Assembly: GCA_002794465.1 (NCBI GenBank)
Contig: MTSL01000174.1
Location: 36,759-44,333, forward strand
From: Paramicrosporidium saccamoebae KSL3
Taxonomy: Eukaryota > Fungi > Cryptomycota
Length of the DNA stretch: 7,575 bases
Direction: 5' to 3'
Below are positions 1,729-4,716 of the stretch, one piece after another (within the stretch, counting starts at the first letter, position 1; each line of letters opens with the position of its first letter). The position numbers and the translations under genes are program-made. A model generated the notes under the pieces. It ran no database searches and was not told the origin of the DNA. It worked only from the letters and a program-made list of their open reading frames with translations.

Positions 1729-2660
1729 TCATTGCAATAGATGTATGATTTCATCAGCGACGGCCTTGCAGCTTACTGAAATGACCTCCCCTTTGTACAA
1801 ATCAAAGACGTCCTTTCCATCGTAGTCAGTAACATGTCCACCGGCTTCGCGGACAATTGCGACAGCAGCACAGATATCCCAGCATTTAATTCCCTTTACA
1901 AGGAATCCATCAACTCTGCCACAGGCAGAGTAACACATTCCCAAGGCTGCTGAGCCCATCATACGGATCTAAAACGGTCAGCAGGGTTACTGAGAGTTGT
2001 ACGCTGCGAACATGACGCATTAGAAGCAAATTGTCCCGAGAAGCATTTTCAATCTCTTCATAATTGGTCGTGAATTCAGTGATTAGGAGACACTGGCTCA
2101 ACGACGCAACTCCTCGGCTGACACTGATGGGCTGATCATTGAGAAAGGCGCCGTATCCAGTGGCGGCAGAGAACATTTCATTTGTGATTGGATTAAAGAC
2201 GACCCCAAGAGCTGGAATTTTGTCAATAGCTAATCCAATTGCAATGCAGAAATTTGGTAGTCTACGACATCCATATGATGCGATCGAGTTTACCCGTGAA
2301 CAAAGTTAGTAGTCCCATCAATTGGATCAACTATCCATGTGGGAGCGTCGGGAATCCCACTCCCTGCTACATGAGTCTCCTCTCCTATAAATCTAATTCG
2401 TCAATTTCGTCTCATCAGGCATACTTGTGTCCAGGAAACTCCTTCCTTAGGCGTTCCTCAATAAACGCTTCAATAGCACGGTCAGTTTCCGTGACCAAAT
2501 CCTGTGCGCATGTCTTGCTTTCCACGCGTTTCGGCTGTCGGAATGCCGTGGCACTCATCTTCCCCGCCTCGGCCGCAATCTCCTTGGCCGCTTTGAGACA
2601 TTCTACACTTAGATGTTTCAATGCGTTATTACTAGACAAATCAACAGTTTCCGCCACCAT
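1729..2660 (-). CDS. Inositol monophosphatase (IMPase), 277 aa; complement(join(1729..1968,2003..2261,2294..2392,2425..2660))
   Basis: Introns 2424-2393 (32 nt), 2293-2262 (32 nt) and 2002-1969 (34 nt), all GTA...TAG, restore [41 protein letters not shown] and WDICAA, the diagnostic IMPase motifs. The paralog (INM1/INM2/IMPA type) cannot be assigned. Confidence 0.92.
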
Positions 2661-2936
2661 TGCAGCAAAAATAACTGATGCAAAGGGTTGCAACACTTTA
2701 ACTATTGCGACTCTACGTAACCAATAGTTGACGGGCGGTGAGTAATTCTAGTATTGTCACTTTTGGCATTGATAATAGAGCCCAATTGAATATGATTTGT
2801 AAGGTTAGTTAATACGACCCTTTATTAGAATCCATGGTCCGTAGTTACACCATCTCAGATTGGTACATTTTGACTTGAATAGGGGCAGCGCGCGGTCCTG
2901 TTGATAATCAAATTGGTCTTATTAAAGTAAACGGCA

Positions 2937-2944
2937 TCTTTATA
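2937..2944 (-). promoter_or_regulatory. TATA-like TATAAAGA facing the IMPase gene (left palindrome arm)
   Basis: Mirror image of the element at 3121-3128; function is inferred. Confidence 0.35.
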
Positions 2945-3120
2945 GGCTGCCATCCTCAATACGATGATAATGGATTGTGGTATCGCCATCGGGATCGAAC
3001 CCTACAATAATAAGTGGATAATACTTAACAGACCTGTTAAACAGCATCCACTTATTATTGGAGAGTCCGACTCAGATAGCGGTTTCACAATCTAGTCTGG
3101 TTATATTAAGAATGGCCACC

Positions 3121-3128
3121 TATAAAGA
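3121..3128 (+). promoter_or_regulatory. TATA-like TATAAAGA facing the dehydrogenase gene (right palindrome arm)
   Basis: 117 nt upstream of ATG 3238; function is inferred. Confidence 0.4.
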
Positions 3129-3237
3129 AGCCATATACTTTAATAGGGGTGAGCACCCATCAACAAGGCCTTTTAACGGGGATTACAACAATGCATTTAA
3201 AAAGTAATGTTGGTCAATTAATCGTTTCGTCGATATT

Positions 3238-4162
3238 ATGACTGGCATTCGTCGGGTTGCAGTGGTAGGTGCCGGTCAAATGGGCGGCGGTATTGCCCAG
3301 ACAGTCGCTGCTGTAGCAAAACTGCCCGTTACTCTATTTGATGCCAGTGCAGAGCAACTAACTCGACAGAAATCATTCATTGGTATGCCGTGCATCCGTA
3401 ATAATCATTGTTGATTCCTTGCTGAGTAAGGATGTGAATAAGCAAAAGATTAGCGAACACGATAAGAAGGAGGTTCTTGGTCGCATCAGCACAACCACAT
3501 CTCTAGCCGATCTCGCAGAAGCCGACTTTCTCATTGAAGTACCTCGGTGCAATTATTGAATGTAGGCAATTTCCGAAGACTTTGTCCGCAAGGAGACCCT
3601 GTTCAAGCAACTGGGAAGTGTTCTGAATAACCGCGATGCCATTGTCGCCTCCAACACGAGCTCCATCTCCATTACAAAATTGGCTGCTACATATCGCCAT
3701 CCGGAGCGGTTCGTCGGCATGCATTTCATGAACCCGGTGCCTGTAATGCGACTCGTTGAGCTAATCTCGGGATGTCAAACCAGCGAAGCAACGATGGCCA
3801 CTACCAAACTGTTGGCCGAGGCCATGGGCAAGACGACCACCGCGTCCAAAGATGTTCCGGGATTCATTGCCAACCGAATCTTGATGCCGTATATCAATGA
3901 GGCTGTATACACTCTCTATGAGGGAATTGGAACCCGCGAGGACATTGACAAAACAATGGTACTTGGGACCAATGTCCCAATGGGTCCTCTCAAGTTGGCG
4001 GACTTTATTGGTTTGGACACTTGTTTGGCTATCACCCGGGTCCTCCATCAAGAGCTTGGCGATTCCAAGTACCGACCATGTCCGTTGCTAGTCCAGTATG
4101 TGAATGCCGGATGGTTGGGCAAGAAGGCCGGTCGAGGCTTTTATGATTACTCGAAACTATAA
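3238..4162 (+). CDS. 3-hydroxyacyl-CoA / 3-hydroxybutyryl-CoA dehydrogenase (Hbd/PaaH/HADH family), 288 aa, C-terminal SKL; join(3238..3382,3414..3538,3566..4162)
   Basis: [15 protein letters not shown] (GxGxxG), ADFLIE|[54 protein letters not shown] and [14 protein letters not shown] are all present. Intron 2 (3539-3565, 27 nt) is canonical. Intron 1 (3383-3413) appears to end in TG; see findings. Confidence 0.92.
3383..3413 (+). other. 31-nt intron with GTATGC donor and apparent non-canonical TG acceptor
   Basis: Read-through hits TGA at 3412. From the GTA donor at 3383 no AG up to 3480 restores the frame. A junction after TTG at 3413 gives [15 protein letters not shown]. Confidence 0.6.
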
Positions 4163-4290: not shown

Positions 4291-4716
4291 TTACAGAGCA
4301 ATGTAAGCAACAGCAGCGGCAGCAGCCACAATCTTGGCAACAGCTGGAGATCCCAATTCGGCAGCAGCATTGCGGCTTGGGCGAGTCACAGTGGCAGTCA
4401 CATCAGAAGTCTGAGTGGTTGAGTCGGTCTCGGTCTCAGTCTCAGTCTCGTCAGTGGTGCTGGTGTTGGTAGTGCCAGACGAGTTTGTGGTCACAGAGGT
4501 AACGCGAGACGTGCTGGTAGTGCTGGTAACAGATGTGCTCGTCGTCACAGAGGTCGAGGAGACGATCGTGGTGCTCACGCTTACAGTGTTGGGGTTCACC
4601 GATGAGCTGGAGCTGGAGGAGGAGGAGCTGGAGGAGGATGAGCTAGACGAGGAAACGGCGGAGCCAGAGGCAGCAGCGATGACGGAAGCGAGGATGAGTG
4701 CGAGCTTAATGTTCAT
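4291..4716 (-). CDS. Ser/Thr-rich secreted, probably GPI-anchored surface/cell-wall protein, 141 aa, intronless
   Basis: Signal peptide MNIKLALILASVIAAASG, 18-Ser run, Ser/Thr/Val body, ETETETET, candidate omega site SRNAAA, spacer and hydrophobic C-terminus AVAKIVAAAAAVAYIAL. No Cys. Confidence 0.85.
   Translation of the reverse strand: MNIKLALILASVIAAASGSAVSSSSSSSSSSSSSSSSSSVNPNTVSVSTTIVSSTSVTTSTSVTSTTSTSRVTSVTTNSSGTTNTSTTDETETETETDSTTQTSDVTATVTRPSRNAAAELGSPAVAKIVAAAAAVAYIAL
4427..4449 (-). repeat. Hexamer tandem repeat (GAGACY) encoding Glu-Thr repeats
   Basis: Plus strand gtctcggtctcagtctcagtctc. Confidence 0.8.
4600..4653 (-). repeat. Poly-serine-encoding low-complexity tract (18 Ser; mixed TCN/AGC codons)
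   Basis: Plus strand shows (gag/gga)n interrupted by gct; codons 22-39 of the gene. Confidence 0.85.

Follow-up and report, generated by a model that had tools for sequence, protein, structure and literature searches.

Between two divergently transcribed genes of Paramicrosporidium saccamoebae lies a long, imperfect palindrome, each arm of which carries a TATA-like box pointing outward at one of the genes. The question that it raises is whether this symmetry serves a purpose, as a promoter, an RNA or a DNA structure, or is simply the trace of the mutation that created it. A member of the Rozellomycota, P. saccamoebae lives as a parasite inside the nuclei of amoebae. Of its genome, 76% is gene space and no more than 0.53% is repeats, which are mainly simple sequence as judged with a RepeatScout library (PMC5701793). 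The window analyzed here is a stretch of 7,575 nucleotides that is an exact substring of contig MTSL01000174.1 (GCA_002794465.1). Its surroundings were studied in a 21-kb segment of the same contig (L001), for which a gene table and Pfam domains were available (window position = L001 position - 6763).

Geometry, extent and setting of the palindrome

The palindrome sits in the 577-bp spacer at 2661-3237, between an inositol monophosphatase gene (IMPase) on the minus strand and a 3-hydroxyacyl-CoA dehydrogenase gene (HADH) on the plus strand. The features on which the argument depends are as follows.

1729-2660, minus strand: IMPase coding sequence as annotated, left flank (L001 gene table, Pfam Inositol_P; start at 2660)
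2894-2905, no strand: possible outer left block GGTCCTGTTGAT, pairing at 10/12 positions with 3159-3170
2944-2933, minus strand: TATAAAGATGCC, TATA-like box toward IMPase, whose annotated start codon at 2660 lies 284 nt downstream of it
2920-3031, no strand: left arm, robust core (inverted-repeat search; gapped alignment 84/112, no gaps)
3005-3019, partner 3046-3060, no strand: CAATAATAAGTGGAT, the longest run free of mismatches, 15 nt (position check, match vector)
3025-3040, no strand: apex TTAACAG-AC-CTGTTAA, in which 7 bp pair perfectly across the 2-nt centre at 3032-3033
3034-3145, no strand: right arm, robust core (inverted-repeat search, position check, gapped alignment)
3121-3132, plus strand: TATAAAGAAGCC, TATA-like box toward HADH, whose start codon at 3238 lies 117 nt downstream of it
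3159-3170, no strand: possible outer right block ATCAACAAGGCC, pairing with 2894-2905
3238-4162, plus strand: HADH coding sequence, right flank (gene table; ATG at 3238, start conserved in relatives)

The arms were delimited by an inverted-repeat search, which returned two blocks of 112 nt each, 75% complementary and 2 nt apart (2920-3031 and 3034-3145). Reading the pairing position by position, for coordinates summing to 6065, gave the same arms, and gapped local alignment returned exactly the same block with 84/112 identities and zero gaps. The three read-outs agree with the sequence-only reading that 112 consecutive gap-free positions pair, 84 of them complementary (75%), and they place 2 nt at the centre. 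A centre-anchored palindrome score of 27 was obtained in the window, compared with 6 to 10 in 20 shuffles of it, and in the 21-kb contig segment the palindrome scored 28, compared with 10 at the next best site. Chance origin was rejected on these scores, which reach 27-28 at the palindrome and never exceed 10 in shuffles or neighboring DNA, and the palindrome is confirmed as real and far beyond chance. Arms that differ at 25% of their positions are incompatible with a read fold-back or an amplification chimera, in line with the earlier judgment that an assembly artifact was unlikely.

The palindrome had been described as extending over about 277 bp. Its core at 2920-3145, about 226 bp, stands, while the outer blocks match at 10/12 positions only after a 1-nt register shift and some 13 unalignable bases. 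Because these blocks are not significant alone in a shuffle test (p ~0.2), the solid extent is about 226 bp rather than 277 bp, and the extension to 2894/3170 is suggestive only. Folding of both strands, which had been proposed as a check, gave a stable stem-loop in each case: -115.5 kcal/mol for plus-strand RNA (z=-8.3 versus shuffles) and -129.9 kcal/mol for minus-strand RNA (z=-13.5 versus shuffles), with -50.3 kcal/mol for the DNA hairpin (z=-7.4). Such stability is automatic, since any palindrome folds stably.

The spacer itself is not unusual in its surroundings. The symmetry had been portrayed as a large investment of DNA against a background of 45-220-nt spacers, but this background does not hold locally: distances between coding sequences across the 21 kb range from 67 to 628 bp and exceed 390 bp in 5/14 cases, so a 577-bp spacer is unexceptional. 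Several observations on the neighboring genes were made in passing. The HADH of the window is 99% identical to the HADH annotated in P. saccamoebae. The annotated protein (P0001, 228 aa) omits about 65 residues, including DSLLSKDV...ADFLIEV, which the window encodes at 3328-3560 and which relatives conserve (P0004); splicing is probably wrong in the deposited HADH gene model. The minus strand at 4291-4716 encodes a Ser/Thr-rich protein of 141 aa whose N-terminus is hydrophobic and in which no Pfam domain was found. Its gene runs over GAG/GCT-type tandem repeats (direct-repeat family D1, 4601-4670). At L001 5525-7903 (in the window, up to 1140), the deposited annotation shows one 543-aa gene with Rap_GAP and adh_short domains. 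The two are separate ORFs in the relatives L131, L002 and L133, and the 543-aa gene may be an annotation fusion.

Decay of the arms and origin of the palindrome

Over 2918-3031 we counted 29 mismatches, comprising 19 transitions and 10 transversions, which is an ordinary ratio and nearly reproduces the earlier tally of 28 mismatches with 18 transitions. The arm divergence of about 25% corresponds to about 0.30 substitutions per site after Jukes-Cantor correction. Mismatches were not clustered (best 16-30-nt windows, p=0.73-0.92 versus shuffled placement), and the 15-nt perfect run is not exceptional at 75% identity (p=0.25). This random placement implies that the TATA-bearing block has not been specially protected. 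Special conservation of the TATA block (p ~0.8) and of the 15-nt run was accordingly rejected. A small group of mismatches flanks the apex at 3020-3024 and 3041-3045. Outward ORFs at 2855-2989 (minus strand) and 3058-3207 (plus strand) encode similar peptides, IIVLRMAAYKDAVYFNK and LVILRMATYKEAIYFNR. Protein-coding arms were considered and rejected, none of four frames bearing a coding signature, with a pN/pS of 0.47 that is not below that of other frames (0.51-0.70), differences distributed 10/6/13 over the three codon positions, and an in-frame stop in the left arm.

One property of the arms fits less comfortably with unconstrained decay. The core arms contain no indels over 112 positions carrying 28 substitutions, whereas by a rough estimate 1.5 to 4 indels would be expected under neutral decay, giving a probability of about 0.1 for zero. 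This is slightly fewer than neutral decay predicts and could hint at constraint on pairing, and so count against a simple duplication, although it is only mildly unusual.

The geometry points to a local inverted duplication, which the sequence-only reading had raised as the source of a symmetric promoter. Gap-free arms of 112 nt, a 2-nt centre and a perfect 7-bp apex are the geometry of an adjacent reverse-complement copy, and the apex TTAACAG-AC-CTGTTAA is likely to be the junction of the inverted duplication. Our preferred reading, to which we give a probability of roughly 0.55, is that the palindrome arose as a lineage-specific local inverted duplication of the template-switch kind and has been decaying near-neutrally in the promoter region shared by the two genes. 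In a single event in the P. saccamoebae lineage, about 115-140 bp of IMPase-HADH intergenic DNA would have been copied in reverse complement alongside the original, through a template switch in which replication jumped, at a short inverted repeat, to the complementary strand or the nascent one, with the present apex as the junction. The arms would then have diverged to their present ~25% in a pattern indistinguishable from neutral decay. Because the copied piece would have carried TATAAAG, the motif would now occur twice, facing outward. New palindromes are unstable, and the mismatch cluster beside the apex (3020-3024) would have stabilized the newborn one. The template-switch origin, the near-neutrality and any contribution to promoter function are inferred. 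That template switching can generate such repeats and hairpins in a single step, and can enlarge inverted repeats at the promoters of yeast, is documented (PMC8794818, PMC5453318, PMC10710096, PMC13100816).

Through homologues of HADH, five loci from uncultured relatives were collected from Logan and ENA assemblies (L002, L006, L007-9, L131/132 and L133). Four of them have RrnaAD and/or adh_short and Mito_carr in common with this locus, and in L006 only the downstream Mito_carr is present. No palindrome scoring above 9 was found in any of the five relative loci, compared with 28 in P. saccamoebae. Both IMPase and HADH are kept in L002, L007 and L133. In L002 they are about 407 bp apart, with a spacer whose fold is no more stable than that of shuffled versions (z=-0.23), and in L133 (ENA ERZ25039472, 5374-5445) only about 72 bp separate the two start codons. 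Since the relatives have no palindrome and can have a shorter spacer, the gene pair works without it. On sequence comparison, the palindrome is specific to the P. saccamoebae lineage among the sampled loci. The coding DNA of the relatives is 66-81% identical to that of the window, a divergence at which the spacers cannot be aligned and the state before duplication is not directly visible.

The stretch separating the two genes varies strongly from one relative to another, and the other relatives differ in gene content at this position. In L007 (1432-3075; also in L008 and L009), the two genes are separated by an ORF of 547 aa whose N-terminus is hydrophobic and in which Pfam recognizes no domain. 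This ORF resembles an orphan gene, peculiar to its lineage, that entered the same spacer, and a transposase was rejected for it given the lack of a Pfam domain and of flanking terminal repeats. No IMPase was found upstream of HADH in L131 or L006. At L131 (4258-5470), tblastn found no upstream IMPase while the order of adh_short and HADH is kept, which suggests gene loss or relocation.

The palindrome could instead be the relic of a foldback element or MITE that inserted in the spacer and has since decayed. A length of 226-277 bp, hairpin potential over the full length, AT-richness and a position beside genes are all properties of this palindrome and are typical of MITEs. As a lead rather than a test, the possible termini GGTCCTGTTGAT / GGCCTTGTTGAT resemble ends of the Tourist/PIF type, although the outer block that would supply these terminal inverted repeats is not significant alone. 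No target-site duplication in the form of a direct repeat was found at either candidate boundary (flanks GCGC|...|TTTT at 2894/3170 and GGTCT|...|GGGGT at 2920/3145). The core ends in TA and TTAA (TATTAAAG...CTTTAATA), where a palindromic duplication of a TA or TTAA target site might be concealed; inside the ends, it would be indistinguishable from the palindrome itself. No transposase is present among the genes of the 21-kb neighborhood, so that the earlier statement that the locus has neither a target-site duplication nor a transposase is borne out for both boundaries and for the 21 kb.

Copy number also speaks to this alternative. The sequence-only reading had suggested BLAST of each arm against the whole assembly. 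The search covered 21 kb of the same contig, 0.3% of the genome, where the palindrome matches itself alone and no second copy was found. An exact 23-base pattern from the best-conserved block of both arms gave 0 matches in JGI metagenomes, and a different 23-base pattern gave 0 matches in viral contigs. Scanning with a 15-mer gave 120 metagenome loci, none with a match longer than 23 nt, and these were all discarded as due to chance. The published repeat content of 0.53%, mostly simple sequence in the RepeatScout library (PMC5701793), makes a sizeable MITE family unlikely, although a handful of copies may exist. Overall, these results disfavor a foldback or MITE relic, which we regard as a possible but unlikely origin.

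TATA boxes and the shared promoter region

As the sequence-only reading had noted, TATAAAGA(T/A)GCC is present in both arms, at 3121-3132 on the plus strand and 2944-2933 on the minus strand, pointing outward so that a TATA consensus faces each of the two divergent genes. The symmetry might have been selected, the arms being kept for their TATA boxes and perhaps for paired transcription factor sites (CAATAATAAGTGGAT), with one arm driving IMPase leftward and the other driving HADH rightward. The location between divergent genes and the retention of an outward-facing box in both arms are consistent with such a symmetric bidirectional promoter, and the 27 nt around each box match at 24/27 positions between the arms. 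The right box, at 117 nt from the HADH ATG, would be compatible with initiation of the scanning type known from budding yeast. In addition, expansion of inverted repeats at yeast promoters can alter expression (PMC13100816).

Several results argue against selection for symmetry. By scan statistics, the TATA element is not preferentially conserved between the arms, matching no better than chance placement of mismatches would give (p ~0.8). No such element is common to the corresponding upstream regions of the relatives, in which the same gene pair occurs without the palindrome and, in one case, with the 72-bp spacer. TATAAA is rare upstream of neighboring genes and absent at most of them. Between the left box and the IMPase ATG there are 284 nt with four upstream ATGs. 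Between the right box and the HADH ATG there are two (3191-3241 and 3207-3221). The first begins a uORF of 16 codons that runs into the HADH start, which suggests that transcription really starts no more than about 30 nt from the ATG. Upstream ATGs at about chance frequency likewise suggest start sites near the coding sequences rather than long leaders, and their presence in both putative leaders argues weakly against long leaders. A short sequence, CGGGGAT(T/A)AC, is common to window positions 3176-3186, outside the palindrome, and L133 5406-5417. It lies 35-60 nt upstream of the HADH ATG and is too short for significance.

The proposal of a bidirectional promoter thus holds insofar as the palindrome occupies the spacer between divergent genes, and it is weakened by the unremarkable conservation of the TATA block and by the relatives that manage without the palindrome. 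We find a promoter selected for its symmetry doubtful. Under local inverted duplication, the mirrored TATAAAG pair exists because the duplicated piece carried the motif, and by our own estimate the chance of finding TATAAA in a 139-nt AT-rich piece is about 0.2. The right box may contribute to the HADH promoter, its 117 nt to the ATG being a yeast-like distance. On the preferred reading, the symmetry would be a by-product and not a selected device.

Hairpin RNA and structural DNA

A further alternative is that the palindrome is a long-hairpin RNA locus, in which a transcript running across it, whether read-through or cryptic and with the minus strand as its likelier source, would fold into a stem of about 110 bp and be processed into small RNAs or serve as a structured non-coding RNA. 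The folds of both strands, the minus strand in particular, are compatible with this idea, as are the core arms without indels, but the stability is that of any palindrome, and the ten transversions break pairs on both strands. A mild bias toward G-U pairs in minus-strand RNA had been pointed out, with counts of 12 and 6. Over 2918-3031 we find G-U pairs possible at 12 mismatches in minus-strand RNA versus 7 in plus-strand RNA, nearly the same counts, and this asymmetry is not significant (binomial p=0.36). Scanning for the signal recognition particle RNA and other long non-coding RNAs in Rfam, another check that had been put forward, yielded only sub-threshold matches. All of these involved the minus strand and generic models of miRNA precursors, and their scores of about 30 bits fell far short of the thresholds, which range from 89 to 184, the best being MIR860 (30.4 bits, threshold 89) and mir-6096 (30.1 bits, threshold 100). 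No tRNA was found by ARAGORN, or in Rfam at E values up to 10. Membership of a known RNA family was rejected on the basis of two Rfam searches below threshold and the absence of a tRNA.

No comparable hairpin was found in L002, L006, L007, L131 or L133, and there is consequently no covariation to count. The TATA boxes, which face outward, would drive transcription away from the hairpin, and in the literature we found no statement on RNAi, or on Dicer or Argonaute, in P. saccamoebae. Template switching has been proposed as a route by which miRNA hairpins are born (PMC10710096). Taken together, with the fold as its only support, a hairpin RNA locus of any kind appears quite improbable. We consider very improbable a variant in which one template switch inside a divergent promoter would have created a hairpin-RNA gene, still young, whose small RNAs would derive from cryptic promoter-upstream transcription, mainly of the minus strand.

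The palindrome might also act as DNA, by forming a cruciform at an origin of replication, by serving as a centromere-like element, or by binding TFIIIC as an insulator. The DNA hairpin fold can be cited for the first of these, and for the last a B-box-like sequence, GGTTCGATCCC, on the minus strand at 3001-2991, which matches the Pol III B-box consensus GGTTCGANNCC exactly; in budding yeast, sites for TFIIIC that consist of a B-box only occur between divergent genes. The match was noticed post hoc, and its calculated chance of about 0.004 per 577 bp on both strands overstates the evidence. The motif is present in one arm only, its mirror in the other, GAGTCCGACTC, having decayed. GGTTCGATCCC also fits the tRNA T-loop consensus GGTTCGANNCC and is followed by ...GGCGATACCA. 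A tRNA gene or tRNA-derived SINE was considered and rejected, as the B-box-like motif stands alone, with ARAGORN and Rfam both negative and no tRNA or tRNA-like fold. Cruciform extrusion is very unfavorable with arms matched at 75%, far from the near-perfect arms that it would call for, and the element is absent from all relatives sampled. A structural role in DNA, whether cruciform, origin, centromere or insulator, thus seems to us highly improbable.

Significance and comparison with known systems

Overall, the palindrome does not look like a conserved regulatory or RNA element and looks instead like a slowly decaying duplication scar. A MITE relic, a hairpin RNA and a selected symmetric promoter are each less likely than local inverted duplication. 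If inverted duplication is correct, the palindrome would be an ordinary mutational relic, the product of a known kind of mutation, and its value would lie in being a clean and unusually long example that has survived in a very compact, nearly repeat-free genome. It would also show how one inverted duplication doubles a promoter motif in mirror image. If both copies of the TATA box were used, a single mutation would have made a bidirectional promoter, and were small RNAs to come from the hairpin, it would amount to an RNA gene that arose de novo. Were it indeed a young hairpin-RNA gene, the birth of a small-RNA locus would have been caught in the act in the Rozellomycota, in an early-branching relative of the microsporidia.

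These assignments can be set against the systems that the palindrome most resembles. Like TATA-containing bidirectional promoters, the locus has head-to-head genes with a TATA consensus facing each, but the boxes of P. saccamoebae, 117 and 284 nt from the start codons, are neither conserved in relatives nor favored between the arms. With foldback elements and MITEs the palindrome shares its size class, its whole-length hairpin potential, its AT-richness and its position beside genes; it differs from them in that no second copy was found here and there is neither an unambiguous target-site duplication nor a related transposase, and in that the P. saccamoebae genome is reported to be nearly repeat-free. 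Hairpin-RNA and miRNA-like loci have in common with it a long, imperfect and very stable stem-loop, and there is a weak Rfam likeness to plant and animal precursors. In contrast to such loci, the palindrome gives scores far below threshold, shows neither conservation nor covariation and has a fold that is predicted only, and canonical pre-miRNAs are much shorter than the ~110-bp stem seen here. The closest comparison is with template-switch quasipalindromes and inverted-repeat expansions. The documented events mostly involve tens of bases and stay below about 100 bp, whereas the arm here measures 112-139 nt, and the unduplicated ancestor is not seen here, the spacers of the relatives being too diverged. 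In both cases, a reverse-complement copy lies adjacent to its original across a very short spacer (PMC5453318, PMC8794818, PMC13100816), and, like those events, the palindrome is single-copy in the 21 kb searched, occupies non-coding promoter DNA and would have been a hairpin perfect at birth that has been decaying since.
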